Origin: Hemiscyllium ocellatum
Taxonomy: Eukaryota
Direction: 5' to 3'
Length of the DNA: 64,000 nt
Assembly: GCF_020745735.1 (NCBI RefSeq)
Contig: NC_083402.1
Location: forward strand, 8,322,004-8,386,003
Below are positions 6,200-52,208 of this stretch, in pieces; within the stretch, counting starts at the first letter, position 1, and every line of letters begins with the position of its first letter. Made by a program: the position numbers and the translations under genes. The notes under the pieces were generated by a model. That model was not told the DNA's origin. It ran no database searches and saw only the letters and a list, made by a program, of their open reading frames with translations.

Positions 6200-6430
6200 C
6201 AAGGGTGACATGGGTGAGTTGTGTCTAAATCTGAACATTTTGTTTATTCATTTGCCGGTCGTGAGCATCTCTGATTGGGCCAGCATTGACTACCTGTCCA
6301 CAGTTGCCCTTGAGAAGGTGGGGGTGAGCTGCCTTCATGAACTGCTCCAGTCGGTGTTCTGGAGGTAAGAGCCACAGAGCCCTTAGGGAGGGATTTCCAG
6401 GATTTTGATCCAGCAACAGTTCCCCACCAC
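6200..6430 (-). mobile_element. SINE 3' portion (same family at about 27270-27600 on + and 32540-32690 on -)
   Basis: Shared aaaatcctggaa.tccctccctaagggc...gcagctcaccaccaccttctcaagggcaac motif. Confidence 0.6.
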
Positions 6431-6572
6431 CTTCTCATGGACAGCTAGGAGCAGCCAGCCCGACCCATGACCTGTGAGGGGATAAGCAAAAAGATAGGAT
6501 TCTTGTTACTGTGACCTGGGGATTATGCCATTAGCTTCCTCTGAATATTAATGTTCCTTGTATGTATTTCAG

Positions 6573-6699
6573 GAATGATCCAGGGTCATCCAGCATTCCT
6601 GAGCCTCATCAGGCCCAGCAGCCGTTGGCCTCAGGTACTGGCTGTACTCGAACTGACCAATCACCATCCATTTCAGACACTGTAACATCGAGTGTGTGA
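6573..6699 (+). CDS. Cytoplasmic exon c2 of gene A: internal donor after 6634, or read-through to TGA at 6697-6699
   Basis: tgtatttcag|G AAT GAT CCA...; (R)NDPGSSSIPEPHQAQQPLAS G|GTACTG, or ...GTGCTRTDQSPSISDTVTSSV*. Confidence 0.75.
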
Positions 6700-7142
6700 A
6701 GCATCAACACAGTGGACAGACATGCAGTGACAGAGTACCATCCTCACTGTACAGCCTGACCACTTTGGACTAACTCTCTTCCCATTCCGTGTGACCCAGT
6801 GAAAAGCAGCATGTTTCCCATTGAGAGCATCACTACTTTTCTTTTGGTTTCTTCACTTTTGGTTTGGAACTGTGATTTTAAAGTTGAGAATTAAAGTTTG
6901 AAAAATAGGTTGTTTGACAAAAGATGAGAGAAGAAAAGGGAAACATTGCTGTTGGAATATGGTCTGGAAAACTAACGCAGGTTAATTCAAGGTCATTGTC
7001 ATTGTCATCGGTGATTACTCACTCATGAGTGTTATCATCTACTGAGGAAATTTGTACCCCTTTTCATAGGTTCTGTGGGTCTTTGTGTGAATCCTGGAGC
7101 CACATCTCCAACCACATATTTGTTGTGTGTTTCTTAGATGTG

Positions 7143-16910: not shown

Positions 16911-17339
16911 AACATTTACGATATTATACATTTCAATCAAGTGATCCCTGTTGTGTGTGAATTACCACAAACTTCGTTTAATTTGGATACATATTAAGAA
17001 ATCTTCGAGACAATGAAATATTGAACCATCTTCCCAAAGTTTATTGCATATAGCAATAAAATAGGACTCCTTAAAAAAAACAAGTTAAGCCTCACGATTC
17101 AACTTAGCTAGTCCCTGATTTTTGGTGGAATTTAGTCTACGATTCTAACCAATAGCATCTGTCTCTGGATATCCAAGGTCCAATCCTTTTGCTGAATTGT
17201 TCTCTGGAGTTCTGCTACTGTAAAATTCTGAAGGTGAATTCTTACAGGATTTTACTTCATGTGGAGTTTCTGATGTGACATTATTGAGTATCCGTTAGAT
17301 AATTTCATCCACAAAATCCATGAGTGATCAAGTCTGTAA

Positions 17340-18490
17340 CTTACCTTCTTATCAGGAGTAGCTTCCTTGTTCCTTGATACATTTGGTGTTAACTATCTCC
17401 TGTCTCCAGGAACAACATGTTGATGTTGTGTTGACTCTTTCTTCCTGGGGATGGATAATTATCATGTTGCTTTTAACTCCTTGATAACAGTTCCTGCTTG
17501 TCTCTTTCATCTCAGGACCAGTTTATTCCAGAGAGAGTCATTGTTTATTCGTTCATCCCCTGAATAGTTATTAAAGTTTGAAGGTTACATTCTCACAGCC
17601 CCTCATTATTCTAAACTCCAGGGGAAACAAACCAAACCTGTCCTCCCTCTCCTCATGAGACAACCTGCTTCTCAATCTCAGAAACCCCCTTTGAGCCAGC
17701 ACCAATATCCTTCATTATGTACAGCATTTGAGATATGGTCTCAGAAATACTCTGTATAACTGAAGCAAAACATTTATACTCTGATACCAATTCCTCCTTT
17801 ATTCTAGGATAGAATGCTGTTAACCTCCCTGATGACATGGTGCAAGTAAGGACTGCAGGACTTGATTCTCCTGCTCCTCGGATGCTGCCTGACCTCCTGT
17901 GCTTTTCCAGCATCACTCTCTTGACTCTGATTACAATGGTGCATCTGTTGACTAACCTACCTCCCATCACACCTCAGAATTCTGCAGTCCTACTCATTTA
18001 AATAATTCTCTACTTTTTCCCTGTGTTTAGTGTGTCTGCCCTGCCCAATGTGTACTCTGTGATCAATATAGGCGAATCCAACTCTCCTGTTCAGGCCTTT
18101 AACCAGATTATGGCAACATTATCACATTGTCTGTGACATCTTGCAGTAATGAATTAGTTGACTACCAATATAAAAATAGAGAGCTTCATCTGCTGTAAGG
18201 GGTGAGCGAGTTTGGAAGATTTGTAGCTCAGGCTGAGGACAGAGGACTCCTGTCCAAAGAAATGGTCACAGAGGCAAAGGCAACGGAAGAAGAGATCAAC
18301 ATCATGTCGTGTCTGAACCTCGGTGAGGTGGGAGTGCAAAGTGATTAAAACTGAGACCTTTGCTGAGTACAGAACATTCAGCATCGGAGAAGGGATAGTG
18401 AATGTCCAACAAGAGGTGGAGGGAGGAGAATGGGGAGAGACAAGTGGGACAGTGGGTGGAGGAAGGTTCCAGAGGGGTGGGGGTAACTCT
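17340..18490. repeat. Segmental block Y, inverted paralog of about 34770-36620, lacking the 35020-35930 part
   Basis: 17340-18110 matches the reverse complement of 35930-36620; 18230-18490 matches the reverse complement of 34770-35020. Confidence 0.8.
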
Positions 18491-24843: not shown

Positions 24844-24881
24844 CTAATGTGTCTTCACCACAGCTGCATAGGTTACATCCG
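24844..24881 (-). CDS. Terminal cytoplasmic exon with canonical ITIM
   Basis: tttctgtctctttctag|CG GAT GTA ACC TAT GCA GCT GTG GTG AAG ACA CAT TAG = xDVTYAAVVKTH*. Confidence 0.8.
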
Positions 24882-25403
24882 CTAGAAAGAGACAGAAATC
24901 AGAGCTGATGATAATTATAAATTCAGTTTAAAGGTAAATGCAGGAAAGGGGCATATTTACCCAAATATCAGTCCCATCACTATCAGAGTAGTTACAGGAA
25001 AGGGAAATATTTACTCCATCAGTTGTACATTTTCCCCTCATTCTCTTGATGACGCTCACAAATACATTGGGAGAGACAAGCTTTTTGAGAGACAGTCAAG
25101 TATCATCCAATGGGATAGTGGAGAGACTGTTTGCTTTCTGATTGGTGGAGTAAAGGAACACTCTAATGAAGATGAATAGATTGACGGGCCAATGACAACA
25201 GCATCGTGGTGAGGGAATGGGGCTTTAAGGTCATGTGATTAAATCTCCATAATGGCGCCACCCAAAGTTGGGGTCTCAAATAACAAGGAAATGGATCACC
25301 CAGGCTCAACTAGCACTGTCCCACACATCGGACAATGGGCTTCAGGGATTGGGAAAGGAGAAAGAATTAGGATTAGGATTCGGAAAGGACAAACCTGACT
25401 CAC

Positions 25404-25439
25404 TCTCTTCTGAATCAGCAACCCGGAGAGTTTTGTCAC
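25404..25439 (-). CDS. 36-nt spacer cytoplasmic exon (phase 1-1)
   Basis: ttctctttcatttcaag|GT GAC AAA ACT CTC CGG GTT GCT GAT TCA GAA GAG A|GTGAGT. Confidence 0.78.
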
Positions 25440-25534
25440 CTTGAAATGAAAGAGAATAGTCTGTTAGTGAGGAGGATGTATTTTAAATGTTTAGAAATAC
25501 CACTATGTGGGAAAAAAAGTATGTAGCTGGTTAC

Positions 25535-25588
25535 CTTGTCTGTTGCTGTCAAACACGATGCTGGCATAGGTACAGGAGTCAGGCTGAG
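25535..25588 (-). CDS. 54-nt Tyr-motif cytoplasmic exon (phase 1-1), ITIM-like CTYASI
   Basis: cctgtttgtattacag|CT CAG CCT GAC TCC TGT ACC TAT GCC AGC ATC GTG TTT GAC AGC AAC AGA CAA G|GTAACC. Confidence 0.8.
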
Positions 25589-28026
25589 CTGTAATACAAA
25601 CAGGATTCACTCTGAAACTGCCTTACTGCATTAGCTTTCTGACTCTGGAATCAAAGAATCATACACAATCCTGGATTCACATCACAGCTTTACCATTGGA
25701 AAATGTTCAATGAACTGCATGAGAATCAGACATCAAACCATATTCGGAGTTATTTGGACAGGTGGTGTTCCAACACGCATGTCTTCAGGAGCGACTTAAG
25801 AGGGGGAAAGAGAGTTGGAGAGGTTTGGACAGGGATTCTCACAGTCTTGGAGATTGAAAATTAGACCTCAGTGATGTTACTATTACAGTCCGGTGAAACC
25901 ACCACCACACATCTCTCTCTAATGAGCGTAGATTAGAGTGGTGCTGGAAAAGCACAGCAGGTCAGGCAGCATCCAAGGAGCAGGAAAATCGACATTTCGG
26001 GCAAAAGCCCTTCATCACTTTAATCTAGACTCTGATCTCCAGAACCTGCAGTCCTCACGTTTGCCTAGCTTTTCCTCTCTAATGAGAGAACAGTCCGATG
26101 CCCTCTGGGACTATGGTGAGTTTACATTTACAGGAAGCGACGTGGAGGGGCCAGATTTGGAAATATTGTGAGTGTATAAGGATGACAGACCCAATGCTGT
26201 GGAAGAATTTGAACCTGAGAAGGATAATCTTTAATTTTATGCCTTTTTCAATTCACGAGCCGTTCTTGGCAACACACCTTGGGAAGGATATTCTGACCTG
26301 AGAAAGGGTGTGGTGCAGAATGATGACATCAGATCTCACAGAGTTAAATTACAAGGTGTGGGATCACAAATTATGTTTGTATCCTGTTGCACTGGAAGGT
26401 TTGGGATGATTTGATTGAAATTCTCAAGAAAAGAAGAGCATAAACGATCTTTCCACATTCTCCAAGTCGGGAAGTCTCAGATGCCTTCCCACGGGTTTCC
26501 TCATTCCACAGTTCCCAACCCTATGCCAGGGTTTCCAATTTTCCCACAGTCCCATGGTTCAGGTTACAAACCCTGCACCCAGCACTCTGAGCCAATCCCT
26601 TCCATTGCAGAGGGAAACACATCCTGGTCCTTCACAATGTACATCCAGTCGGTCCATGATTTTAAAGAATCACGGTTCACAGTGTCTCAGAGATATTGGG
26701 GATCACAGTTTACATGAGGGAACTTATTGGGGGTTAAATTCAAAGTGTGTCCCTTGCTAAGGCATCCCTTTTATGCTCCCCCTTCCAGAACCCACTTACC
26801 ATCCCCTCACCATGCTAAGATGTGGCACTTTGACACCCATTCCCAGGTATTTCAAGTGAGTAATACTTTCCTGGAGATATTTTCCAAACAAAATGATTAG
26901 TGATATTATTACACACCTCTGGATCAAGTGGGACTTCACGGAGACCTCCTGGCTTTGAAGGAGGGACATTACCACTGTACCACACGACCCCTAATGGTCT
27001 TGATCATAGAGTCATAGAGATGTAGAGCACAGTAAAAGGCCCTTTGGCCCATTGAGTCCATGCTGGTCAAAACCAACCATCTACCCATTCCAATTCTATT
27101 ATCGAGCAGTTGTCCCAATACTTTATACATCAACATTGCACCTAAACAGACCTTAAACATTATGAGGGTTTCATGCCTGTGTCACCCTTAAAAGCAATGA
27201 CTTTCAGATTCCCGTTCCTCCGAGTGAAAAGGTTTCCCTCACATCTCCGATAAACCTCTAACATTCATCAAAGATCCTGAGACATCACCTTCCCAACCCA
27301 CGATAACATCCAGCTAAACATTCAGTGGCAGCAGATAAATGGGAACACCACCACCTGCAAATTCCCCTCCAAGGCACTCACCGTCCTGGCTTGGAAATAT
27401 ATCATCACTCCTTCACTCTTGTTCGGTCAAAATCCTGGAATTCACTCCCTAAAGGCATTATGGGTCAACCTCCAGCACGTGGACTGTCACGGTTTAAGAA
27501 GGCAGCTCATCGCCATCTTCTCAAGAGATCAACAAGGGATGGCCAATGAATGCTGGCCAGCCAGTGACATGCATGTTTCATGAATGAATAAAAACAAACA
27601 CCCTGCCCCGTACATTAAATTAATGTCCCATGGTCACTGATCACTCCATCATGGGGAAATAATTTTCAATTCAACCGTATTTATGTCCCTCATAATTTTA
27701 AGCATTTCAATCATGTCTCCTCTCAATCTCCTCCTCCCTGGAGAAAACAATCTATCCAAATTCTCTTCAGAATTGAAACTCTCCAGCCCAGGTAACATCC
27801 TGGCAAATCTGCTCTGTACCCTCTCCAGATCCCTCCCATAATATGGATTCCTGAACTTCACACAATTCTTTAGCTGTGACCTAACCAATTTTTCATCCAG
27901 TTCCAGCATAACCTCACTGCTCTGAGTTAAGCTCTATGCTTCAACTAATAAAGGGAAGTATCCCATAGGGTTTTTTATCCACGTTATCCACCTGTCCCGA
28001 TACATTAAGGGACTGGTGTACATGTA

Positions 28027-28230
28027 CTGAAAATGTGTTGCTGGAAAGGCGCAGCAGGTCTGGCAGCATCCTATGAGCAGGAGAATCGATGTTTCGGGCA
28101 TGAGCCCTTCTTCAGGCTCATGCCCGAAACGTTGATTCTCCTGCTCTTTGGATGTTGCCTGACCTGCTGCGCTTTTCCAGCAACACATTTTCAGCTCTGA
28201 TCTCCAGTATCTGCAGTCCTCACTTTCTCC
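28027..28230. mobile_element. Head-to-head (palindromic) pair of Penelope-like termini
   Basis: ctgaaaatgtgttgctggaaa..gggcatgagc / gctcatgcccg..ttccagcaacacattttcag inverted arms. Confidence 0.75.
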
Positions 28231-28269
28231 TGGTGTACATGTACACCAAGGTCACTCTGATCCTTGGTG

Positions 28270-29960
28270 TTTCCCATGGTCCTATTGCTCATTATGTCTT
28301 CCCTTGCTTTTTCTGTCCTGCCCAAGTGTATCACCTCACGCTTATCCAGGTTGAATACTGTTTGCTACTGATCAATCTATCTGAGCAGCCCGTATAGATC
28401 CTCTTGTTATCTAAGGCTATCCTCCTCAATATTTACCACCACAACTATTTGTTTATCATCTGGAACCATATTGATCAACCCTTCTTCATTCCAGTCACAA
28501 AAATGTCCCTCAACCATCATCCTCTGTTTCCTGCCAGTCAGTAAATTGTGCATCGAATTTGCCCCAAATTTCCTTGGATCCCATGGGCTCTCACCTTTGC
28601 TATCGTTCTCCCATATGGAACCTGGTCAAAAGTTTTGCCGAAGTCCAAGAAGACACAAGAACATCAGAAATCGGAGCAGGAGAGGGCTGTCTGATCCCTC
28701 GAGGAGAATGTGAGGACTGCGGATGCTGGAGATTAGAGTCGAAGAGTGTGGAGCTGGAAAAGCACAGCCGGTCAGGCAGCATCTGAGATGTAGGAGAGTC
28801 GTCATTTCGGGAAGAAGCCTTCCATCAGGAAGAAAGATCCTTCCTGGTGAAGGGCTTATACTCGAAACGTCAATTCTCCTGCACCGCAGATGCTACCTAT
28901 CTGGCCCCTCGAGCCAGCTCCATCATTCAATAAGATCTCTTTTAAAATCTATCTCCCTTTGCATTAAAAAGATGGCATTAAATTCATTCCCCGCGTCTAC
29001 ACATCTGGTAACCTCTTCAAAACAAATTCAGGGAAGTTGTTAAGATATGACCTCCTGAGCAAATCCATGTTCATGATTGATCCCTGTCTCTCCAAATGCA
29101 GATCCATTCCGTCCCTCAGAATTACCTCGAACAGTTTCCACACCACTGAGTATAGACTGAGAGAAAGTGGGAACTGCACATGCTGGAGAGTCAGAGTTGA
29201 ACAGTGTGGCACTGGAAAAGCACAGCAGGTCAGGCAGCATCTGAGGAGCAGGACGGTCGATGTTTTGGGCATAAGCCGTTCAATAACCTGATCTGCCACA
29301 CATTTTGACACTAAGTTAAGACTGACTAGCCTGAAGTTTCCTGGTTTATCCCTTGTTCCCTTCTTGAGGTACCACACTGGCTGTCCTCCTGTCCTCCAGC
29401 ACCTCTCCTGCAGCCGGAGAGGAATGGAAAATTATTTCCAAAACCCCTGCTATTTTCTCCCCTGCCTCACTCAACAACCTGAGATACATTTCATCCTGCC
29501 CTGGAGATTTATCTACTTTTTGCCGTCCATACCACTCAGCAATTCCTCTCGATGTTCATTTCTTTAACCTTGTCACAGACTATCTCCCTGATTTCTACAC
29601 CAAAATCATCCCTCTCACACCTGAACAGCAACATAAAGCTGTCAATTACAGCCTGACATACATCTTCTGGGTTCAAGTTTCAATTACAACCATGGTTTTT
29701 GTTGTCTTTTTACCATGAATATTCCTTTAAATATTTTGAATGTTTCTTTATATTACCTGTCAGTATACTTTCATATTTCCTTTAAGCACTCTGAATCTCC
29801 ACTTTAAGTTCCCACTTGCACATTTTATAATCCTCCAGAAATTGCTCCTGTTTTGAATTCTCAGTATCTGCCATAAGCCTCCCTTTTCCCTTCATCCAAT
29901 GCTGTGTATTCCTCAGTATTCAAGGTTCACTGGATTTGTTGGTCCCACCCTTTAGCCCTG
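28270..29960 (-). mobile_element. Old CR1 LINE fragments interrupted by short repeats
   Basis: KKGTRDKPGNFRLVSL and DLHLERQG remnants. Confidence 0.65.
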
Positions 29961-30339
29961 TACTCTCCTTATTTCCTTCTTCAATGCATCCCATTGCATA
30001 CCTGGTCTGGCCGACATGTGACTCCAGTCCCACAAAAGGGCACTGCTGTAAGGTACAGTAATTGTTGAAGAATGGGAGGGGCTGTCAGTGAGCAGATTTA
30101 TACAGGGCTACAAGGTGCCACATGCTCAAAGAGGAAGCCAATGTCATCAGGAAGTGATGGAAAGCAGCAGCCAGTCTCAAAGATTGCACTGCAGCAAATA
30201 TGCATTTAGAAACATTGTACAGGATGATTTTCCATTTACTTTGGTAAATGGAGGGTACAGAAACAGATATTTTATTTTAAAGACACAGAGATTTGCCTCC
30301 TCTGACTCATCGAGGTGAGGAAGCAAATTGTTGGGAGCT

Positions 30340-31115
30340 TGTACAGAATCCTTGGATTCTGTTTAGTCACAGGACAGGTCCCAGAGCACTGGAGAAGAGC
30401 CACCATTGTTCCTTTGTTTGAGGGCAACAGGGATAATACAGGAACTTACAGGCTGGTGAGCCTTACGTCCGTGGTAGGGAAAATATTGGAGTAGATTCTT
30501 AATGACTGGCTATACTCAATTTGAAAAAAATATCTTCTTATTAACACGAGGCAACATGGTTTTGTGCAGGAAGGTCATGTCACAGAAACTTGATTCAGCC
30601 TTTTGAGCAAGTTTCATGATTGACAATGACAGGGTGATAGATATTGTCCACATGGACTTTCGTAAGGCCTTTGACAAAGATTTTCATGACAGGCTGATAC
30701 TGAAATTGAAGCCACATGGATCTGCGGAGAGGTGGTAAGATGGATGCAGAATTGACTTAGTCATAGAAGACAGAGAGTAGTGGTGGAAGGGTGTTTTTCT
30801 GACTGGAAATCTGTGACCATTGGTGATCCACAGGAGTCAGTGTTGGGACCCCTGTTAGTTCACAACACTTATAAATATTTTGGAGAATATTGTAAGTGGG
30901 ATGATTAGTAAGTTTGCAGATGACACAAAGATTGAGGGAGCTTTGGATCGTGAGGAAGATTGCCAGAGGATACAGCAGGACATATAAAGGCTGTCAACTT
31001 GGGCACAGAAATGGCTGTTGTAATTTAATTTTGAGAGACATGTGGTGATGCATAAGGTCTAATGCAAGAGGGAAGTATACAGTAAATGGTACAACCCTTA
31101 GAAGCATTGAAGAGA
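30340..31115 (+). mobile_element. CR1 LINE RT fragment
   Basis: GNYRLVSLTSVVGK, MDFRKAFDK, SKFADDTKI-type sequence with frameshifts. Confidence 0.8.
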
Positions 31116-31659
31116 TCTAGGGTAGCTTACTCCCTCCTGCTGCAGGCCTTTCCTCACTCTTGGTTCAGGCTTTCCCTCACTCCTGGTTTAGGCCTTCCTT
31201 CACTCCTGGTGTGGCCCTCCCTTAATTCCTGACATCTCACTGCAATTATATCGATCTTTGGTGAGATCCCACCTGGAATGTGGTGAACGGATTGGATTTC
31301 CATATCAACAAAAAGATTCACTTGTTACAGAGTGAGTGTCATACACTGTCTTGAACCAGGGAATACAGTCTCAGAATGAGGGATAGGTGGTTGGAACTGA
31401 GATGAGGGGGAATTTGTTGTTTCGAAGCAGTTAATCTTGGGAATTCTCTCATCAAAGAGCTGTGGAAGCTTAACCATTGAGTATGTTCATGAATGAGATT
31501 GATAGTTTCCCGGCATTAAAAACATTGAGGGGTAAAGGGATAGTGCAGGAAAGTGGTATTGAACTACAAGCTCAAACATGATCCTCTTGAATGGTGGAGC
31601 ATCTTGTCCTTAGTGGAGAACGTCCTGATACACATTCTCCTGACTCTCCTACTTCCTGT

Positions 31660-32520
31660 GGCTGTGGGAATCCTTCCAAAGACACACTACAGCTTTAAAC
31701 CTTCCAATAGAATCACCAACATGGCCTTTGTTGTCAGACAAATCCAAGTGAAATGTCAAAAACAACACCAGGAACTCTGTATTACATTTCTCAACCTGAT
31801 CACAGCAGATGACTCAGTAAATCACTTGATGAATCATATTCTTAAAATTTGGAATGTCCAGAAACTTCTTCCAAATTCTGCAATTGCTTTGGGATGACTT
31901 GACATCTTCAGGAACGGATGTCTTCAAGGAATATGACCAAGGTAAAGCAACACTGTGTGATAGCTCCATATTATCTATAATCTACCAAACAGCAGCTTTG
32001 ACTTCTGGTTTCAGGATTAAACACGGCCCAGACAGAAATCTCTTCAACCTCAGTCTCATCCATGCCAATGATAAAATGACCACAACAGACCAACATAAGA
32101 TGCAGTACGCACTGATAACATCACTGTTGTTTTCACATTCTGCACCCGACTAGCAAGCCACCCTTGATCTCTTCAATGCTGCAAACAAGGGACTTGGCCA
32201 ATGCTTGAGTGTTGCCAAACCAAAACACAAATCACTGGTCAGTTCAATATTCTACCTCTTGTACATGCTAAGACTCCGGGATACATTAAGCACTCTCGAT
32301 AGCTTGGGAGCACCTCCGTCAAAAGGTTGCCCAGGGCTGACATCACTGGCTCTGCCCATCAGTGCCAGTCTCAGTCCAGCCCATAGGTGACCACGAGGGC
32401 ACTCTGCTTCTCAATGCCCATTGGGGAAGAGATCCAACACTGGATCAGCTGAGACAGCTCAACCTTCCAGAAACTATGGCAGTGACTGTTTGACAACAAA
32501 GCTCTCCACAAGGCAGCAAA
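31660..32520 (+). mobile_element. RTE-clade LINE RT fragment, degenerate
   Basis: LPKTHYSFKPSNRITNMAFVVRQIQVKCQKQHQELCITF resembles the RTE LPESQCGFR..TDMIF..RQ.QEKC motif. Confidence 0.65.
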
Positions 32521-32954
32521 AAGTCCTTGCTTTCATCATCAGTCGGTGTAAATGTTGGGAGACCCACAATGCCACTGGGGAGGGAATTCCAGGAGTGTGA
32601 CCCAGTGACAGTGAGCGAACGACAATATATTTCCATGTCAGTACAGAGTGGGTGGCTTGGAAGGGAACTTGGAGCTGGTGGTGATCCCATGTAACTGCAG
32701 TAACAAACAGGAATGCAGTGACTGCATCTTCACGGTCAGGAAACTGAACAGTGTTTAGACACATTCCCTGTTCTTCCAAAGACACAAACTTCAAAAGCTT
32801 TTGCCTCTATATTTTTGAAATCATTTCATTTTTTGTGTGTGTTTGGGACTTCTTCAATTCATTAACCAACTACTGCAGCTTGCAGGATGTTTTATAATGT
32901 TTCGATTCACAATCACCTTGTTAAATACAAATCGTTCTGAGACTCGGAGCGATT

Positions 32955-33272
32955 AAGGGGTGCCACAGTGGTACAGTGGTCAGCACTGCTGCCTCACAAC
33001 ACCAGGGATTTGGGTTCAATTCCCACCTCGGGCAACTGTCTGTATGGAATTTGCACATTCTCCCTGTGTGTGCATGGGTTTCCTCCAGGTGCTCCAATGT
33101 CCTCCCACAGTCCAAAGATGTGCAGGGTAGCGAATTGGCCATGATAAATTGCTTATAGTGTTTGGTGAAGGGGTAAATAAAGGGGAATGGATCTGGGTGA
33201 GTTGCTCTTTGGAGGGTCGGTGTGGACTGGGTGGGCCGAAAGGCCTGTTTCCACACTGTAAGTAATCTAATC
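32955..33272 (+). mobile_element. Full-length HE1-type V-SINE
   Basis: tRNA-like head, V-domain (ggaatttgcacattctccctgtgtgtgcatgggtttcctcc), LINE-derived tail and (taatc)n end. Confidence 0.85.
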
Positions 33273-34599
33273 AAAGTAACTGTTCCAGTCTCTGACAGGT
33301 ACAGATCAGAGTTAACTCTGTTATGTCACACGTGTGTCTTATGGAATGCCACTCCAGTGTGGCAGCAAAACAGGAAATATTGTCTTCCCGTTGTACTGCA
33401 TTATACATAACAGGAGGAGACCACTCAGCCCCCTGTGCCTGGGCTGGCCCTTTGAAAAAGCTATTGAAATTAGTCACACACCCCGTGTCCTTTCCTGGGT
33501 CTGCTGCATTGAGTCTGTCATGTGACCTCTGGTTCTTTCATCACCACCTTTACCTGGATCCATTTACTAACTGACTGTCCTGCCTTTGGAAACAGTTGCT
33601 CATGACTTGCTTTCGAAAGACTCTTCTTGAATTGGCACAGCCCAATCAAATCTCCCCTGAATCTTCTCTGTTGTAAAGACAATACCAGTTCCTCCAAAGA
33701 ACTGAAGTCTCTCTTCTCTGGAACCATTCGATTCATCTGCTTTGTACAAAAACATCTTCCTTAAAGGATAGTGCACAGAATTGGTCATGTGTCTGCAGCT
33801 GGGCTCAAACTGATGTTTTGGAAATGTCCATCCTTGCTTTTCTACTCCATTTGGCATTCAATAAAAACAAACATTTCTTTTGCCTATTTTAATGCATTTC
33901 ATTAAACCTCCAAGCTTCAAAGACTTCTCAATGTGCATTTCTGCTAACTTTCTGTTCCTGTAACCATTGTAAAATTACACCATTTATCACACCTCTCTTT
34001 GTTCTTCCTATCATGATGTGTCACTTCACTCTTCCCAGTGTTAACTTTCATTTGGCTAGCCATTTCACCAGCCTATATGCCCCAGAGCCTGTCAGCACTT
34101 TCCTCACTCTTCACTGGGTTTTGAATTTTGTGTCATCTGCAAACATTGGAGTTTGTCCTGTATCCCTGAGTGCAGATCACTCACAAAGATCAAGAAGAGA
34201 GTTATATCACCAGCGCTGCACACTTCCCTCCTGTCTGAAATAAAACCACAGACCACAGCGCTCTGCTTCCTGGCCCAAAGCCAATTCCCAAACCACACAG
34301 CCAGTAACTTTGAACCTCATCTGCTTCAATTTCAAGAAGATATGTACATCGTACTTCACAGCAGGGGCAAGCCCTATGGCCCATTGAGTTTTCTCCACAA
34401 TTCATTAAGACCATAACTGATCTGGTTCTGGCTCAGTTCTGCTCTCCTACCTTGTCCCCACTCCTCTCGATAAGGCCAAAGGCTTGTGTTAGCACTGAGG
34501 CTATTGGGATGAGAGGGGTTGATGGGACGGGATGGGGTCATTCGTTGACATAAACAGTGAATGAGTTTCGTCCTTTGTGTTTTGAATCCACCCAGGATC

Positions 34600-35175
34600 A
34601 CAGCTCTCTCCTCAGACAGCTGCTCTCACCACATCCAGAGACCCACCCTCAGTGCTATGTGCCATCATGTACACACTCTTGACCTCTCTCTCCATCAGCA
34701 CCCCTTCAACTGTCTCAAAGCTGTCCTGAGCCCCAGTTCGACTTAATTCTCCGGCTCATTCACCCGATACCATGTACCCCCACCCCTCTAGAACCTTCCT
34801 CCACCCACTGTCCCACTTGTCTCTCCCCATTCTCCTGCCTCCACCTCTTGTTGGACATTCACTATCCCTTCTCCGATGCTGAATGTTCTGTACTCAGCAA
34901 AGGTCTCAGTTTTAATCACTTTGCACTCCCACCTCACTGAAGTTCAGACACGACATGATGTTGATCTCTTCTTCCGTTGCCTTTGCCTCAGTGCCCATTT
35001 CTTTGGACAGGAGTCCTCTGTCCATCCCACAGACCCCTTCACCCACCTCCAACTCTCTTCCTCCACCTGGACCCCTCCCTCTGGCCTTTAAGCCGCACTT
35101 GTCTCGTTCATTGAGAACTGACACTGGTCTTTGTATTTCTCTGCCCTCCTCCATTCACTCCTCTCTCCCACTGAA
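34600..35175 (+). mobile_element. Penelope-like element ORF N-terminal fragment (paralogous copy at about 18200-18490 on -)
   Basis: TRHDVDLFFRCLCLSAHFFGQESS..TWTPPSG resembles the pre-RT region of the element at 36.8 kb. Confidence 0.6.
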
Positions 35176-35268
35176 CTGAATACTCTCAGGCTGTTCTGTC
35201 CACACCAGTCACTCATCTCATCTCAGATCTAGACAAAAGCTCAAAACCACCAACGTACGGCCATTTCC

Positions 35269-35316
35269 CTGTTCTGTTGCTGTCAATCTTGGCACAGAAG
35301 CTGGAACTGTCCTGAT
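35269..35316 (-). pseudogene. Dead duplicate of the 48-nt ITIM exon
   Basis: ttacag|AT CAG GAC AGT TCC AGC TTC TGT GCC AAG ATT GAC AGC AAC AGA ACA G|GGAAAT: Tyr->Cys and donor GT->GG relative to 39901-39948. Confidence 0.8.
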
Positions 35317-35374
35317 CTGTAACACAAACAGGAATGATAAGGGGATATTTATTGGTAGGTGTGTTGTTAGGTAT

Positions 35375-35800
35375 CAGCAACAGCTCAGTGGACACCACAT
35401 ACCCCTCGGAGTTAGAAGGCTGTGGGTTCAATTCCCCATTCCAGTGATTACAACGTAAGATCAATGCTGAGACTTCGGAGCAGTTCGAATGGAGCGCTGC
35501 AATGTCTAAAGTGTTATCTTGTGGCTCAGATGTTCAAGGTTGCACTGGCCTGCTCTCTCAGGTGGAGGTGAACAATTCCACATGCATTACTTCAATGAAG
35601 AACAGAGGAGCTCTCTACCGTGTCCTTGTCACTCATCCCTCAACCCAGATCATTGTGTCCTCACCATCACTCATCCCTCAGGCTACATCATGAAAATACA
35701 CAGGCTAACTGATTGAACACAGTGCTGTTTGTGGGACATTACTCTTCACAAACTGGTTGTTGCATTTCTCATTACCAGAATGAAAATAAATGCATTTACG
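35375..35800 (+). mobile_element. Deu-domain-type SINE; its head is also present at about 40015-40050, cut by a LINE
   Basis: tRNA-like head tatcagcaacagctcagtgg..; gctgtttgtggga..aaactggttg motif. Confidence 0.55.
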
Positions 35801-36829
35801 CCTAACTTTTCATGATCTCAGGGCACTGAATAACCCCTTACAGCAGATGATGCTCTATTTTTATGTTTGCAGTCAACTAATTTCTTACTGCAAGCTGCCA
35901 CAAACCACAATGTGATCATGATGTCATCATCTGGTTAAAGCACTGAACAGGAGAGTTGGATTCGCCTGTATTGATCACAGAGTACAGACATTGGGCAGGG
36001 CAGACACACTAAACACAGGGAAAAAGTAGAGAAATATGTGAATGGAGAACCACTGCAGAATTCTAACCTGTGGTGGGAATCAGGTCACAAAGGGAGGTAC
36101 ATTCTTACACCATGGAATCAGGAAGGTTAATAAAATGCTATCCTTGAATAAAAGAGGAATTGGATATAAACATAAACATGTTATTTTAGATATACAAGGC
36201 AGTTCTGAGATCACATCTCAAATGCTGTACATAATGAAGGATATTGGTGCTGGCTCAAAGGAAGTTTCTGAGTTTGAGAAGGAGGTTGTCTCATGAGGAG
36301 AGGGAGGACAGGCTGGGTTTGTTTCCCCTGGAGTTTAGAATAATGAGGGGCTGTGAGAATGTAAACTTCAGAACTTTAGTAATGATTCAGAGCTTAAACG
36401 AATCAACAATGACTTTTTTCTGAAATGCAGTGGTACTGAGATAAAAGGGACAAGGAGAAACTGTTATCAAGGAATTAAAAGCAACATGTTCATTAGCCAT
36501 CCCTGAGAAGAAGGAGTCAACACAACATCAAGGATCTGTTCCTGGGATACAGGAGAGAGTTAACACTGAATGTAACAAGGAACAAGGAAGCTACTCCTGA
36601 TAAGAAGGCAAGATACAGACAAGTGACTTGAAGAGTAATCAGTGTTGTGGTTGAACGGATTGAAATGATCATCAATCATCTCACACCGGAGATTTTACCT
36701 GTCCATCGAGAACTGCTAACATTACATGGATCATTTTATTTCTCTGCCCTCCACCATTCACCCCTATGTCCCCCAAACTGACTGGTGTCAGGCTGTTGTG
36801 TCCACAACAGTTACAAAGTTCATCTGATC

Positions 36830-38170
36830 CAGCATCTCCCCACCACCCCCATAGCCTCCAAGCTCACATTCCCACAATCCTGACTTGCCCACTTCTGCCT
36901 TCTTCCCAAAATCTATAGCTGGACTGCCCAGGCAGACCCAGGGTTCCTGCTTCTTCCTGCCTGAGGGAACTTATCTCTGCTGACCTTCACTCAATTTTTC
37001 CGCCCCTTGTCCAGCCCTTCCCAACTACATCCATGATTCTTTTGCCACTTTATGTCAGTGTCAGAATTATTGGTTAGTGAGCTCCAGCCACCTCCTCTTC
37101 ATTGGTGTGGTCACACGTACCCACCTGGGCCCCAGTTATGCCTCTCTCATTGTGGGGCAAGTGGAACATTCCTCATTCCAGGCCTCCTCAGGCCACTCCC
37201 ACAACTCTTTCTCCTGTATGTCGATGACATCATCAGTGCTGCTTCCCTCTCTCATCCAGAATTGGAAAAAGTGATCAATTTCACTTCCAATATCCACCCT
37301 GTTCTCACCTTCACCTGATCTCTGACACCTCCCTTCCCTTCCTTGACATCTCTGTTTCTATTTCTGGGGATAGGCTGGCCACCAATATTCATTCCAAACT
37401 CACTGACTCCCACAGTTACCTTGACTCCCCATCCTCACACCCTGCTTCCTGTAAAGACTCTGTTCCATTCTCCCAGTTTCTCCAAGCCCACCGCATCTGT
37501 CTGATGGGGCCACATTCTGCACAGGGGTCCTCCGAAATGTCAAGCTTTATCCTCAACCAAGGATTCTCCATCACCACGGTTGACAAGGCCCTCAGCCGTG
37601 TCCAACCCATCTCCTGCATTTCTGCCCTCATCACTTCCCTTCCCTTGCCTTGCCCTCATCTATCATCCCACCCACATCCACATCCAGAGGATCATTAACC
37701 ACCATTTCCACAGCACTCCAGCGGTGCTCAGTGCAAGGTGGAAGAACAGCATCTCATTCTCCACATGGGCACCCTGCAGCTTCCTGGCCTCAGTATTGAG
37801 TTCTAAATACTTTTACAGCCAGAACACATCATTCCATGTGCTTTATCCATCCTCACACCTCAGGCCCTGTCATGACATGAGTTGTTTTCAGCACAGCCAA
37901 ACCATTTTCACCAACTTATTGTCTCCACTATCAGCTTTTCATTCTCCCTGGCATCCTTTTGATGATCTGACTTCCATTCACTACCTCTGGGCTCCATCTC
38001 CCCCTATCTGCTCACTCCTTTTCCCCTCCTCCATCACCTGTCTTTACCATAGATACCATTTTCCTCCAGCTACAGACAGTTCTGAAGAAGGATCACTGGA
38101 TTTGAAATTTTAACTCTGGTTTCTCTCCACAGATGCTGCCAGACCTGCTGAGTTTCTCCAGCATTTTCTG
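36830..38170 (+). mobile_element. Penelope-like retroelement RT, degenerate, with hammerhead-like terminus near 38080-38115
   Basis: FCLLPKI..CPGRP; THLGPSYASL; FLLYVDDIISAAS; FTSNIHPVLTFT; PFLDISVS; KDSVPFSQF. Confidence 0.8.
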
Positions 38171-39771
38171 TTGATTTATATTGGAAGGCTTCCTGAACAA
38201 GAAGAGGAGGCTATTCAGCCCATTGTATATGTGTTGATTGATAAAGGGCTCTCTAGAACATCCCACTGCCCAGCTCCTGGTCCATAGCCCTGGAGACTCA
38301 TGTTATTCAAATCCTCATCCAAGTGAGTTTTAAATGTCGAAGTCAAAAAGGGTGGTGCTGGAAAAGCACAGCCGGTCAGGCAGCATCCGAGGAGCAGAAG
38401 ACTCATTTTTGATGAAGAGTTTATACTTGAAACATCGACTCTCCTGCCTCTTGGAAGCTGCCGAACTAGCTGTGCTTTTCCAGCACCACACATTTTGACT
38501 CTGATTTGCAGCATCTGCAGTCCACACTTTCTCCTGGGTTTTAGATGTGTTGACGGTTCCTGTCTCTCTAAACATAGACTACAGAACATGGAACAGGACA
38601 GTGCAGGAACATGGCCTTTGGTCCTCCATGTCAGTACAAACCATGATGCCATTCTAAACTAATCCCATTTCCCAGCACATGGTCCATCCCTCTCTATTCC
38701 TGTTGTTCATGGACCTGTCTAAATGGCTCTTAAATGTTGCTCACAGATCTGCTTCTAGCACCTCCCCTGGTAGCCTGTTCCAGACACCTACCATCTCTTT
38801 GTTAAAAGCTATCCTCACAAATCACCCTCAAATTTTTCCTCATTCACCTTAAATTTATGACGCTTGTATATGACATCTCCACTCTTTGAAAAAAAACTGA
38901 CTGTCCCCCCTATCCCTGCCTCTCATAAATTTATGTATTTCTGTCAGGTCTCCCCTCACCCTCCAATACTCTCACAAATATAAATCCAGGTTTGACCAAG
39001 TTCTCCTGATAGTTAACACACACCAAATCAGGGAACATCCTGCTCAATCTCTTCTGCACCTTTGTTTTGTGCACAAGTGCCCCTAAGTCCCTTCATGTTG
39101 TAGCTTTCTTCCATTTCTTTTCTCCAGACCTGCTGAGTTTGTCTGTTTGTTTCTCAATCATGACTCCTACATACATGTCCAAACTTTGATAGAAGCTGAA
39201 CACTGAGGGAACTAGTCCTGAGTGGCACTCGGAACAGCATCGCAGTCACAAAACTACCCACTCACAATAACTCAATGTCTCCTGCTTTGGATCAATCTCG
39301 CCACTTTCCCCTGGATCCCATGAACCTTTGATTCTGTGACCAGTCTGCCTTGTGGAACTTCACCAAACACCTTGCTAACATCCGCATTGATGGTCAATAT
39401 CAAACACCCAATCAACCATCCTTCAATACTCCTTAAAAATTCAATCACGTTTATCAGACCCGACCACCCTTCAACAAACGTCTTCTGAGGGAATGGTACT
39501 GGGTCAGACTGGCATCATGAAGACCTCATCAGGGGAGAATTCAAGGTCAGTTAAAACTGAACTGGGGGTTCTCATTTGGGATGATTCTCTGACGGTGGCC
39601 AGGCACGAATTCTATGAGTTGACCAGTTTCCCACTGCAGCTTCAAACATCAACACTGCAACTCCTCCTCAGGAAACCAGACCCACAGTGAAATCAGCTCT
39701 TAAAGATATGGGGGAGTGGGAGTGATCTCAAACAATACATTTTCTCAATATAGAAACAAATGTTGACTCAC

Positions 39772-39807
39772 GGCCTTCTGACAGACTGTTTGTGAATCTC
39801 TTGCCAC
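39772..39807 (-). CDS. 36-nt spacer cytoplasmic exon (phase 1-1)
   Basis: cattttgtctttgttaaag|GT GGC AAG AGA TTC ACA AAC AGT CTG TCA GAA GGC C|GTGAGT. Confidence 0.78.
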
Positions 39808-39900
39808 CTTTAACAAAGACAAAATGTTCTCTTAGTTTGATTATAGAATCTGAATATCAATTAGACAATTGCTCAAAACCTTTAAGGTGCAGCCATTTAC

Positions 39901-39948
39901 CTGTTCTGTTGCTGTCAATCTCAGCATAGAGGATGAAACTGTCCTGAT
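39901..39948 (-). CDS. 48-nt ITIM exon (ILYAEI), phase 1-1
   Basis: cattcctgtttgtgttacag|AT CAG GAC AGT TTC ATC CTC TAT GCT GAG ATT GAC AGC AAC AGA ACA G|GTAAAT. Confidence 0.82.
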
Positions 39949-40051
39949 CTGTAACACAAACAGGAATGATAAGGGGCCATGCATCAACAGGCTTGTTCTT
40001 AAATATCAGCAATGGCTCAGTGGAAACCACATCATTCTCTGAGTTAGAGAT

Positions 40052-43024
40052 GTGATTGGAGCAGGTGAAATATTGGACTTGAAGCATGGGTTGGTACTTG
40101 GGACTTCGATGTTGTGACCATTTTGGAGATATAGGTAGAGTAGGGACATGGTTGGTTGTTGCAGTTCCAGGATTTAGATGTTTCAGTAAGAGCAGGGAAG
40201 ATAGTAAGGTCGGGGGAGGTGGTGTGCGGTGGCATTGTTAGTCAAGGACAGTATTATGATTGTTGAAAGGACATTTGAGGACTCTCTACTGAGGTAGTAT
40301 GGACTGAGGTTAGAAACAGGAAAGGTGAGGTCACTCTGTCGGGAGTTTTCTATAGGCCTGCAAATAGTTCAGAGATGTAGAGGAAAGGATAGCAAAGATG
40401 CTTCTGGACAGGAGCAAGAGTGACACAGTAGTTGTTATGGGGGTCTTTAACTTTCCAAATATTGACTAGGAATACTATAGTTCATCTACTTTAGATGGGT
40501 CAGTTGTTGTCCAATGTGTACAGGAGGGTTTCCTGACACAGTACACAGACAGGCCAACAAGGGACGAGGCCACGTCAGATTTAGTACTGGGTAATGAACC
40601 TGGCCAGGTGTTCAATTTGGAGGTAGGTGAGCACTTTCATGATAGTGACCACAAATTGGTTAAGTTTATTTTAGCAATGGAAAGGGATGGGTATATATTG
40701 CAGGACAAGAGTTATGAGTTGGAGGAAAGGCAACTACGATGTGATTAGGCAAGATTTAGGATGCATGGGATGGGCAAGGAAACTGGAGGGGATGGGCACA
40801 ATTGAAATGTGCAGCTTCTACAAGGAACAGTTACTGTGGGTCCTTGATACATATGAGTAAAAAGTGAGGTCTGCAGATGCTGGAGATCAGAGCTGAAAAT
40901 GTGTTGCTGGTTAAAGCACAGCAGGTCAGGCAGCATCCAAGGAAAAGGAGTGATTCCTGATGAAGGGCTCTGGCCCAAAACGTCGAATTTCCTGTTCCTT
41001 GGATGCTGCCTGACCTGCGGTGCTTTAACCAGCAACACATTTTCAGCCTTGATACATATGTACCTGTCAGGCAGGGAGGAAGTTGCTGAGCGCGGGAGCC
41101 GTGGTTTACTCAGGGAGTTGAATCTCTTGTCAAGAGGAAGAAGAAGGCTGATGTTAGGATGAGATGTGAAGGCTCAGTTAGAGCGCTTGAGAGTGACAAG
41201 TTAGCCAGGAAAGACCTAAAGAGAGAGCTAAGAAGAGCCAGGAGGGGACATAAGACATCATTGTCAGATAGGATCAAGGAAAACCCTCAGGCTTTCCATA
41301 GGGATATCAGGAATAAAAGAATGACAAGAGTAAGACTGGGGCCAATCAAGGATTGTAGTGGGAAGTTGTACATCGAGTCAGAGGAGATAGGGGAAGCGGT
41401 AAATGAATATTTTTCCTCAGTATTCACACAAGATAAAGATAACGTTGTCGAGGAAAATACTGAGATACAGGCTACTAGGCGAGATGGGATTGATGGTCAT
41501 AAGGAGGAGATGTTAGCAATTAGGGAAAATGTGAAAATAGATAAGTCGGATGGGATTTCCCATGGGTTCTCTGGAAAGCCAGGGAGGAGATTGTTGAGCC
41601 TTTCACTTTGATCTTTATGTTGTCATTGTCGATAGGAATGGTGTCAGAAGATGGAGGAGAGCAAATGTTGTTCCTTTGTTCAAGAAGGGAGTAGAGAACA
41701 ACCCTAGTACTTATTAACCAGTGAGTAACTAGGGTAATGTGTTGGAAAAGGTTATAAGAGATAAGATTTATAATCATCTGGAAAGGAATATGTTGATTAG
41801 GGATAGTCAACACGGTTTTGTGAAGGGTAGGTCGTGCCTCACAAACCTTATTGAGATCTTTGAGAAGGTAAACAAACAGGTGGATGGTGGGGAAAGCTGT
41901 TGATTTGGTGTATATGGATTTCAATAAGGCATTTGATAAGGTTGTGCATGGTAGGCTACTGCACAAAATACAAAGGCATGGGATTGAGGGTGATTTAGTT
42001 GTTTGGATCAGAAATTGGCTATCTGAAAGGAGACAGAGAGTGGTAGTTGCTGGGAGATGTTTATTTGGGAGTTCAATTACTCGTGGCGTACACAAGGATC
42101 TGTTTTGGGTCATGTTTGTGGATGACCCGGGTGAGGGATTTGATGGATGGGTTCGTAAATTTAGAGTTGACACTCGGGTTGGTGGAGTTGTGGATCATGT
42201 TGAAGGATGTTGTAGGTTAAAGAGAGACATAGATAAGCTGCAGAGCTGGGCTGAGAGGTGGCAAATGGAGTTTAATGTGTGAGGCGATTCACTTTGGAAG
42301 GAGTAACAGGAATACAGAATTCTGGACTAATGGTAAGATTCTTGGCAATGTAGGTGAGCAGAGAGTTCTCGGTGTCCATGCACATAGATCTCTGAAAGTT
42401 GCTCCCCAGATTGACACAGTTGCTAAGAAGGCATATGATGTGTTAGCTTGTATTAGAGAAGGGATTGAGTTTTGGAACCATGAGGTCATGCTGCAGATAT
42501 ACAAAACTCTGGTGTGGCTGCACTTGGAGTATTGAATGCAGATCTGGTCACCGTATTACAGAAAGGATGTGGAAGCTTTGGAACGGGTGCAGAGGAGATT
42601 TACGAGGATGTTGCCTGGTATGGATGAATGTCTTACAAGGAAAGGCTGAGGGACTTGAGGCTGTGTCCATCAGAGAGAAGAAGGCTGAGAGCTGACTGAT
42701 TTGAAACATAAAATAATCAGAGCGTTAGATAGGGTGGACAGTGAGATCCTTTTTCCTCAGATGGTGATGGCTTTAAATTGAGGGGAGATCAATATCGGAC
42801 AGATGTCAGAGGTAACTTATTTACTTAGAGAGTAGTATAAGCGTGGTAAACACTGCCTGCAACAGCAGTAGACTCATTAAATTGAAGAGCATTTAATGGT
42901 CATTGGATAAACATATGGATGAAAATGTAATAGTGTTTGATGGGCTTCAGATTGGTTTCACAGGTCGGCACAACATCGAGGGCCAAAGGGCCTGTGCTGC
43001 ACTGTAATGTTCTATGTTCAATGT
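40052..43024 (+). mobile_element. CR1 LINE ORF2 (APE + RT), about 3 kb, degenerate
   Basis: GVFYRP, DFNFPNID, LDLVLGNEPGQV, YMDFNKAFDKV; (tgttcta)n tail. Confidence 0.9.
40856..41046. mobile_element. Palindromic Penelope-terminus insertion with a 14-bp TSD inside the LINE
   Basis: ccttgatacatatg at 40842-40855 and 41047-41060; inverted arms ctgaaaatgtgttgctggttaaagc / gctttaaccagcaacacattttcag. Confidence 0.85.
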
Positions 43025-43985
43025 TGGACGCTGGTGGAGAGTTGAGGTGAGGTGGGGGGAGCATTGGAGAATGCGGGGATTGAGAAGAGAGTGAGAACAG
43101 ATTCAGTAGTTTTCATATCCTTGCAAGGCACGTGGGTCTCACAGGCAAGGCCAGCGTTTGTTGCCCATCCCTGAACACCCTTGAAGTGAGAGACTTGCTT
43201 GGCCATTTCAGAGGGCAGCAGGTCAGAGTCCGACACATTGCATTCAATCGCTCCTAAAAAGACACACTGAGGTTTGAAATGGGGATCTGAAGTCACCTGT
43301 CGGGCAGATTGGGTAAAGATGGTAAGTTTGCTTCCCTGAAGGAGACTGGTGAACCAGAACTTTTTTGAAGACAAAAAATAACATTAATTCAGATGGCCAC
43401 CATCACAGAGTTGAGTTTATGATTCCAGATTTAATAATTAAATATAAATTCTACAATTTGCCATGGTGAAAATTGAACCTTTCTCCCCAGAGCATGAACC
43501 TGATCCTCAGGTTCCCCACTGGGAGTCATTTGAGATGTGTGACACCCAAGTGGACTGTTTTCCTTGACCCATACCGAAGCAGCAGACAGACTGGCCGTGA
43601 ACAGCTCGAGGCAGCAAGGACCGGGCCGAGCCAGTTACTCAGCCAGATGATTCAGGGAATCGGAAATGGTTATTGTCCAAGAATCCATCCAGGGTCAGGG
43701 ACTGAGGAGAAGATTTCCATCTCCATTGCCCGGACAATAATCCAGAGTCTGGTCAGATCCCTTAATGGAAACCCATAGCTTTTCACTCATTTACATTGAA
43801 TGGTGTGAAAGTTAAAAGGTTCATCTATCAAAGACGTCAATCTGTGCAATAAGTGTGAAGGGTTAAGGTTGGGGGTAGGGATAGTTTTCAACAGATGCAG
43901 ACTCAATGGGCCGAAGGGCTTTATTCTGTGCTGGAGAACTGTTCAACTCAATGTAACAGTCTGCCCCTGAATATCTCTCCAGGAT

Positions 43986-44112
43986 TCACACTCTCTCTGT
44001 TGGAGTCTCTGAAATGGACAATGATCGGTCAGTTAGAGTACAGACAGTACCTGGAGCAGTGAGCTGCTGGGCCTGATCAGTCCCGGGAATGCTGGATGAA
44101 CCTGGATCATTC
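43986..44112 (-). CDS. Cytoplasmic exon c2 of gene B: 62 nt to the internal donor at 44051, or read-through to TGA at 43986
   Basis: tgtatttttcag|G AAT GAT CCA...GCT CCA G|GTACTG; NDPGSSSIPGTDQAQQLTAP; read-through ...SISETPTERV*. Confidence 0.8.
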
Positions 44113-49592: not shown

Positions 49593-49632
49593 CTTTCCAA
49601 AGCTGTGGTCAGATCCATTTGCTGTGAACCCC
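49593..49632 (-). CDS. Cytoplasmic exon c1 of gene B (40 nt, phase 1-2)
   Basis: tttttatctctttag|GG GGT TCA CAG CAA ATG GAT CTG ACC ACA GCT TTG GAA AG|GTAAGG. Confidence 0.82.
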
Positions 49633-52085: not shown

Positions 52086-52208
52086 CTCCTTTCTTCCTGA
52101 AGGTGATGAAGATGATGACAATGATGCTGATGATGAGGAGGAGGAGGAGGATGAGCAGTGGAATGACCAGCGAATATACTGAGACATACTGAGCAGGCTG
52201 AGTCTTCA
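52086..52208 (-). CDS. Transmembrane exon of gene B (123 nt, phase 1-1), no charged TM residue
   Basis: gttttacag|..(V)KTQPAQYVSVYSLVIPLLILLLLLIISIIVIIFITFRKKG G|GTGGGT. Confidence 0.88.

Follow-up and report, generated by a model that had tools for sequence, protein, structure and literature searches.

Two-exon cassettes in the tyrosine-bearing tail of the epaulette-shark receptor gene LOC132826572

Introduction

How can a receptor change the number and spacing of the docking tyrosines in its cytoplasmic tail without disturbing its reading frame? This question is raised by a 64-kb stretch of the epaulette-shark (Hemiscyllium ocellatum) genome, referred to here as the window, whose minus strand carries the 3′ half of the receptor gene LOC132826572. 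A sequence-only reading of the window had proposed that the tail encoded between 24.8 and 39.9 kb carries ITIMs (immunoreceptor tyrosine-based inhibitory motifs), that it was built by repeated duplication of a two-exon cassette consisting of a short tyrosine-bearing exon (Tyr exon) and a short spacer exon, and that one copy had since been silenced. Here, we report that a modular cassette tail, altered by the gain, loss and skipping of mini-exons, is the best explanation of this locus, with a probability of about 0.8.

Results

The tail exons belong to an annotated receptor gene

The window exons correspond to a gene that is already annotated in RefSeq. Splicing eight minus-strand exons in the order given in Table 1, from the transmembrane (TM) exon at 52208 to the stop codon at 24844, gave exactly residues 267–410 of XP_060698522.1 (LOC132826572 isoform X2), so that the C-terminal 144 residues of this protein and the spliced product are identical, and AG/GT was found at every boundary of the eight exons. 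Because the spliced product equals this segment, the exon chain of the sequence-only reading is the annotated gene model. The annotated gene spans 73.6 kb, and its leader, V1 and V2 exons therefore lie ~34 kb past the end of the window. LOC132826572 encodes a type I receptor in which a Siglec-15-like V domain is joined by a second domain of the V-set type, an uncharged TM segment and a tail of ~100 residues. The TM segment (VYSLVIPLLILLLLLIISIIVIIFITF) contains no K, R, D or E and ends in RKKGG. Using the V-like exon at 54 kb as a HMMER query retrieved further members of the family among shark and ray RefSeq models; the H. ocellatum models were found by a second search, which took the tail of one of these models as its query.

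The arrangement originally described, a Tyr exon with its acceptor followed 93–95 nucleotides (nt) later by a 36-nt spacer exon with a GTGAGT donor, at 39948/39807 and again at 25588/25439, was seen in full on the minus strand. The four cassette exons all have lengths that are multiples of three and symmetric phase 1-1, and phase 1 is the entry phase of Tyr exons 1 and 2 and of the terminal Tyr exon alike. The earlier statement that all exons are phase 1-1 holds for these four cassette exons; the two cytoplasmic exons upstream, beyond the span it covered, run from phase 1 to 2 and from 2 to 1 and can therefore be skipped only as a pair. Each cassette contributes one tyrosine and 28–30 residues, and the tyrosines of ILYAEI, CTYASI and VTYAAV are spaced 28 and 27 residues apart. 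Two of these motifs, ILYAEI and VTYAAV, fit the ITIM consensus (I/V/L/S)xYxx(I/V/L), so the description as an ITIM tail stands for them, whereas CTYASI fails at the Cys in position −2 and is only ITIM-like.

A second donor, CAG/GTTTGT (25395–25404, minus strand), lies 9 nt past the GTGAGT of spacer exon 2 and moves the exon end to 25395. Its use gives isoform X1 (+SES; …SEESESADVTY…), which differs from X2 only by this donor, and the same alternative occurs in several paralogues.

Table 1 Features of the window, with the spliced exons of LOC132826572 numbered in splice order.
Feature	Coordinates	Strand	Splice order	Description
Transmembrane exon	52086–52208	−	1	123 nt, phase 1-1; 100% identical to XP_060698522.1 residues 267–308
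Cytoplasmic exon 1	49593–49632	−	2	40 nt, phase 1 to 2; GSQQMDLTTALE
Cytoplasmic exon 2	44051–44112	−	3	62 nt, phase 2 to 1; RNDPGSSSIPGTDQAQQLTAP
Tyr exon 1	39901–39948	−	4	48 nt, phase 1-1; DQDSFILYAEIDSNRTG; ILYAEI, canonical ITIM
Spacer exon 1	39772–39807	−	5	36 nt, phase 1-1; GKRFTNSLSEG; GTGAGT donor; 93-nt intron separates it from Tyr exon 1
Tyr exon 2	25535–25588	−	6	54 nt, phase 1-1; PQPDSCTYASIVFDSNRQG; CTYASI, ITIM-like, Cys at position −2
Spacer exon 2	25404–25439	−	7	36 nt, phase 1-1; DKTLRVADSEE; GTGAGT donor; 95-nt intron separates it from Tyr exon 2
Terminal coding exon	24844–24881	−	8	entered in phase 1; (T)DVTYAAVVKTH + TAG; VTYAAV, canonical ITIM
Partial duplicate of the Tyr-exon-1 region	35230–35416	−		187 nt; pseudo-exon 35316–35269 (DQDSSSFCAKIDSNRTG)
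Remnant head (A box) of putative tRNA-like SINE-type element	40002–40048	+		upstream of Tyr exon 1
Putative full-length tRNA-like SINE-type element	35370–35780	+		A box AGCTCAGTGG, B box GGTTCAATTCC; adjoins the dead copy
V2 relic exon, V-set	53996–54351	−		in-frame TGA at 54268–54266 where paralogues have TGG (Trp)
V1 pseudo-exon, Siglec-15-like	59725–60337	−		split by a 243-nt insertion; no AG acceptor left

The two cassettes are significantly alike

The 16-nt acceptor CCTGTTTGTRTTACAG occurred at exactly three sites in the 64 kb (39949–39964, 35317–35332 and 25589–25604), against 0.15 expected, and the exon end GACAGCAACAGA..GG(T/G)AA was found at the same three Tyr-exon sites, against 0.05 expected. 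The motif TCAGAAGnnnGTGAGTCA was restricted to the two spacer exons. Local alignment of the Tyr exon plus acceptor scored 39, compared with a maximum of 26 among 4000 random windows, and a chance origin of the Tyr-exon likeness was rejected (p < 1/4000); the spacer-exon alignment score was reached by 11 of the 4000 random windows. Profiles run with nhmmer on both strands of the window recovered three Tyr copies and two spacer copies and no others. On the plus strand, neither DNA patterns nor nhmmer profiles found any Tyr or spacer copy that could form the tail of the truncated paralogue at 2.1–6.7 kb.

Between cassettes 1 and 2, 15 of 16 bases of the acceptor tract are alike, as are 18 of the 20 nt that make up the exon end plus donor (17/19 in another alignment). 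The spacer ends (TCAGAAGnnnGTGAGTCA), the intron length and the phase all agree. These observations show that the two cassettes at 39.9 and 25.5 kb, each made of a Tyr exon, a short intron and a spacer exon, are significantly homologous, one of two points on which the sequence-only reading had staked its case.

A dead copy of the Tyr-exon-1 region

The third site, at 35.3 kb, proved to be a partial duplicate. Its pseudo-exon has the same base as the 39.9-kb exon at 42 of 48 positions, with five replacement differences and one silent difference. The two lesions reported for it were confirmed, namely the loss of the tyrosine to Cys (TGT for TAT) and of the donor (GG for GT), and no spacer exon follows it. 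Repeated cassette duplication is upheld by the two homologous cassettes and by the recurrent duplications in skate and Narcine described below, while the third copy in the window is a Tyr exon only.

The 39.9- and 35.3-kb copies align at 80.7% over 187 nt. Of this stretch, ~47 nt belong to a pol-III A-box head and ~40 nt are unique flank; the exon and 39 nt of the intron make up the rest. Since this non-coding flank is common to both copies, the duplication occurred at the DNA level and later than the insertion of the upstream element. The earlier claim that both copies share the head of a short interspersed element (SINE), and that the duplication postdates it, is borne out by this alignment as far as the shared head is concerned; the SINE label itself, read from the A and B boxes alone, is provisional. 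ARAGORN and Rfam gave no match to the element, and no further copy was found except at the orthologous site in zebra shark, where the same element lies directly upstream of the single Tyr exon 1. The element is thus older than the split from the gene of zebra shark. On the upstream side of the live copy, a long interspersed element (LINE; ~40078–43025) occupies the place where the remainder of the SINE-type element would be expected.

Comparison with the zebra-shark locus (L002) shows how the two copies are related. Window positions 35893–35230 match L002 26102–26767, a stretch that takes in the complete A-box/B-box element, ~40 flanking nt and the Tyr exon and extends into the intron for 36 nt. 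Positions 40048–39608 match L002 26582–27010, which holds the head of the element and the Tyr exon, then the short intron and the spacer exon with sequence past it. The live and dead copies are thus complementary halves of a single ancestral region and have the 187-nt duplicated piece in common. They go back to a later duplication, at the DNA level, of the region around Tyr exon 1. The half at 39.9 kb retained the exon, short intron and spacer and is the live copy. In the half at 35.3 kb, the upstream element and the exon were retained, and spacer, GT donor and tyrosine are gone.

Cassettes in other elasmobranchs

Cassette 1 of the zebra shark consists of 48 nt, a 92-nt intron and 36 nt, and is followed by 3.6 kb; cassette 2 consists of 54 nt, an 88-nt intron and 42 nt, with 487 nt to the terminal exon. 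This locus has two Tyr and two spacer copies only and no counterpart of the 187-nt dead copy. In Mustelus, cassette 1 reads ..CTYADINKNRT / VDKRVTISASED and cassette 2 reads QPDSCTYASLV.. / ..LQVADSEE. Because cassettes 1 and 2 are orthologously conserved in zebra shark and Mustelus, the duplication that produced them is older than the split between orectolobiform and carcharhiniform sharks.

Counting cassettes in paralogues and related species, as the sequence-only reading had suggested, thus gave two in zebra shark and in Mustelus, and in the little skate (Leucoraja erinacea; L001) a unit in tandem duplicate. This skate unit pairs a Tyr exon of 78 nt with a spacer of 30 nt, and both exons are phase 1-1. 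The tandem duplication (L001:27672–31661) is ~3 kb long, with 84–94% identity running through the introns and intron identity of up to 94%, and it is independent of the shark duplication and much younger. A doubled four-exon block was found in Narcine. The number of Tyr motifs in a tail ranges from three to seven across the family, which also includes short-tailed members of activating type whose TM segment holds a Lys. At 29 residues, a shark Tyr exon and its spacer together look like the one 26-residue Tyr exon of skate, so the short intron may have been gained in sharks or lost in skate.

Whole tail exons differ between annotated isoforms

Differences of whole tail exons among annotated isoforms were always in frame. 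Mustelus LOC144495190 X3 is without exactly the 16 residues (48 nt) of Tyr exon 1. Leucoraja LOC129695285 X2 is without the 10-residue spacer and its X3 without the first Tyr exon and spacer. Hemitrygon isoforms differ by an 18-residue Tyr exon, and the 14 isoforms in Narcine differ by 16- and 17-residue exons. Within the H. ocellatum genome, the paralogue LOC132826527 X3 is without the 12-residue spacer 1. Tyr exon 1 is missing from whale-shark models and spacer 1 from some Chiloscyllium models. An exon of the 35.3-kb type was included in none of the annotated isoforms. Together with the skate and Narcine duplications, these isoforms support the proposal that ITIM number can be changed by exon gain, loss or skipping without a frameshift.

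In four models (P0094, P0095, P0100 and P0103; H. ocellatum, C. punctatum and R. typus), the 123-nt phase 1-1 TM exon is skipped in frame. These isoforms predict soluble proteins with the whole tyrosine tail, an odd product if real.

Relic V exons and neighbouring repeats

Residues 18–156 (V1) of XP_060698522.1 matched the human Siglec-15 structure 7zoz (E = 7e−15), with weaker matches to CD33 and Siglec-8, and the second domain of the product is a generic V-set. The live product has YRCRVEL aligned with YFCRVEF of Siglec-15, and the relic V1 in the window has YQCHVEL (59790–59770). Arginine is lost in the relic exon but kept in the expressed gene. In Siglecs, the Arg essential for sialic-acid binding lies on the F strand.

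The V1 and V2 exons within the window are dead relics in a long intron. They were rejected as the head of the gene, as the V domains of the RefSeq product are only ~85–90% identical to them (~85% for V2) and both exons are broken. The insertion in V1 has 100-nt palindromic arms that are 97% complementary (59976–60075 and 60085–60184), with a 12-nt direct repeat, AGGATATGTACA, on either side; it may represent a foldback insertion, an insertion of the miniature inverted-repeat transposable element (MITE) type or an assembly foldback. A LINE adjoins the 5′ end of the V1 pseudo-exon at ~60343.

The truncated paralogue at 2100–6700 on the plus strand is inverted and forms part of a co-linear inverted duplication of 54.4–44.0 kb. 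It has a frameshifted V2 (2127–2400), a TM part (~3974–4090) and parts like cytoplasmic exons 1 (5366–5407) and 2 (6571–6672), and is without Tyr or spacer exons. A further inverted repeat, 17332–18485 (plus) against 36620–34775 (minus), consists of three pieces with 85%, 86% and 97.6% identity. Identity is much higher over the final 249 nt, which points to gene conversion or to an element of younger age. In the minus-strand arm only, the dead Tyr copy lies between pieces two and three.

Discussion

In the reading that we favour, the signalling part of the tail consists of two homologous cassettes and a terminal Tyr exon, each cassette being a Tyr exon, a ~93-nt intron and a spacer exon. When phosphorylated, ILYAEI, VTYAAV and perhaps CTYASI would recruit the tandem-SH2 phosphatases SHP-1 and SHP-2, and the resulting inhibitory signalling of LOC132826572 is predicted from these motifs only. 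In bidentate binding, the spacer exon may serve as a ruler. Over evolutionary time, the gain and loss of cassettes would alter how many docking tyrosines there are and how far apart they lie; in-frame exon skipping would do so within a cell. The original observation was confirmed and its interpretation is supported, with four corrections: the third of the copies is a partial one, one of the motifs is non-canonical, the equality of spacer lengths is derived and the V exons of the window are relics.

Several points weigh against a modular tail of this kind. All isoforms cited here are Gnomon predictions, so skipping is known from models alone, and some of the family models are plainly poor. XP_072448591.1 (P0026, Chiloscyllium punctatum) spans 125 kb and its N-terminal half reads the V2 exon in the wrong frame, while its tail is a 93% match to that of the window; it is probably a chimeric or pseudogene-derived model. 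For LOC132826572 itself, the annotated variation is the alternative 9-nt donor only, and no isoform with a skipped exon has been annotated. In zebra shark, Mustelus and whale shark, spacer 2 has 42 nt; the 36 nt of the window arose by a 6-nt acceptor shift, and the equal 36-nt lengths of the two spacers are thus a derived coincidence, not an ancestral feature. The motif most conserved across the family, CTYASI, is a non-canonical ITIM, and YAEI, YASI and YAAV all match the YxxPhi sorting consensus too. As regards the mechanism of the 35.3-kb duplication, no convincing target-site duplications were found around the 810-nt segment that bears the dead copy.

With respect to how the copies arose, it is highly improbable that the likeness of the two cassettes reflects chance or convergence among short exons held to one motif constraint. 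The likeness is limited to exons and splice sites, and the 93- and 95-nt introns barely align, as such convergence would have it, but several features agree jointly, the alignment score lies far above that of 4000 random windows and protein constraint cannot account for identity in the intronic polypyrimidine tract. A good deal more plausible, although we lean against it, is the idea that the 35.3-kb copy is a repeat-mediated by-product, either an antisense read-through retro-copy of the element with its 5′ flank or a template-switching patch. The copy is a complete element plus merely 187 nt of flank and lies within the 810-nt segment, which is missing from the inverted paralogous arm at 18203–18237; on its 3′ side the homology ends 39 nt into the intron and is followed by a 96-nt piece related to 36731–36825, from which it would have been copied. 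Neither a target-site duplication nor an A-rich tail was found, however, a tandem duplication of the whole region with two complementary deletions fits equally well, and the LINE stands exactly where the upstream half of the live copy was lost.

Concerning function, the Tyr motifs might serve mainly as YxxPhi endocytic or sorting signals, or as docking sites for other SH2 proteins such as Csk, SHIP or SAP-type adaptors, instead of recruiting SHP phosphatases as ITIMs, in which case cassette number would tune trafficking rather than inhibition. The fit of all three motifs to YxxPhi and the position of DSCTYASI, with Cys at −2, outside the ITIM consensus speak for this. We nevertheless consider it unlikely, given that two of the three motifs are canonical ITIMs, that an uncharged TM segment with a long tail beside short-tailed relatives with a Lys in the TM is a classic inhibitory/activating pairing, and that a tyrosine spacing of 27–28 residues would suit tandem SH2 binding. 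Slightly less likely still is that the locus is a decaying copy, its tail exons being used through read-through from an upstream paralogue or joined by annotation and its cassettes now functionless. The V1 and V2 of the window are indeed dead, through the 243-nt palindromic insertion and the in-frame TGA, the annotated gene needs ~34 kb more of upstream sequence, and poor or chimeric models occur in the family. Against decay, none of the eight TM and tail exons is broken, their splice sites follow the consensus and what they encode agrees exactly with the RefSeq product, and tail residues are ~93–94% conserved with paralogues and Chiloscyllium, compared with five replacements in 17 residues in the unused 35.3-kb copy.

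A wider proposal, which we regard as tentative and rather doubtful, is that cartilaginous fishes possess a large unnamed family of paired receptors, built from a Siglec-15-like V domain and another V-set domain, whose inhibitory strength is set combinatorially by including or skipping Tyr and spacer mini-exons in frame. Recurrent selection would have re-amplified the cassette on separate occasions in sharks, in skates and in electric rays. If true, this would be the most ancient exon-level control of ITIM dosage, in phase 1-1 and unlike the claimed phase-0 pattern.

The gene was already annotated and the principle is known, being textbook knowledge for PECAM-1 and related receptors, so no new principle is put forward. 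The value of the locus lies in a dated evolutionary series of growth and shrinkage of an inhibitory tail, with one fresh duplicate dying, in an uncharacterised receptor family of the oldest jawed-vertebrate lineage. It offers testable splice junctions and three peptides for SH2-binding assays, and the relic status of the window V exons matters for reading the ligand-binding side of this gene. Our literature search found nothing on this shark receptor family or on ITIM cassette duplication.

Among known systems, PECAM-1 (CD31) carries two ITIMs spaced for tandem SH2 binding of SHP-2. Its exons 9–16 resemble the shark tail, which is likewise assembled from short exons with tyrosines on separate exons, and splicing removes a Tyr exon whole. 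Exon 14 of PECAM-1 is a 19-residue exon with Y686 in VYSEI/V, and its cytoplasmic exons are alternatively spliced (PMC2132561). The ectodomain of PECAM-1 is unrelated (six C2 domains) and its tail exons are no obvious duplicates of a two-exon cassette; in the shark unit, by contrast, the Tyr and spacer exons are joined by a conserved ~90-nt intron and have been re-duplicated independently in several lineages.

The N-terminal V-set of the shark product aligns to human Siglec-15, and several members of the family bear the name Siglec-15 or Siglec-12 at NCBI. In mammals, Siglec-15 carries a TM Lys, uses DAP12 for signalling and is without an ITIM, whereas the shark gene has a neutral TM, three Tyr motifs and a V-set instead of a C2-set second domain. 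Because of its neutral TM and tyrosine tail, LOC132826572 is not a Siglec-15 orthologue in the functional sense. CD33-related Siglecs have a membrane-proximal ITIM and a distal ITIM-like motif.

The teleost NILT and NITR and mammalian PIR-B/LILRB systems are similar in being multigene families of the immunoglobulin superfamily, with paired ITIM and charged-TM members and a variable number of ITIMs. Salmon NILTs carry four to five ITIMs, all in one large last exon, and ITIM-bearing exons have been stated to be always phase 0, citing the PIR-B gene (PMC3022915). In the shark gene, unlike NILT, the cassette tyrosines each lie on their own 48–54-nt exon in phase 1-1, as Tyr exons also do in skate and zebra shark. 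The phase-0 rule is a generalisation from the literature and does not represent a functional requirement.

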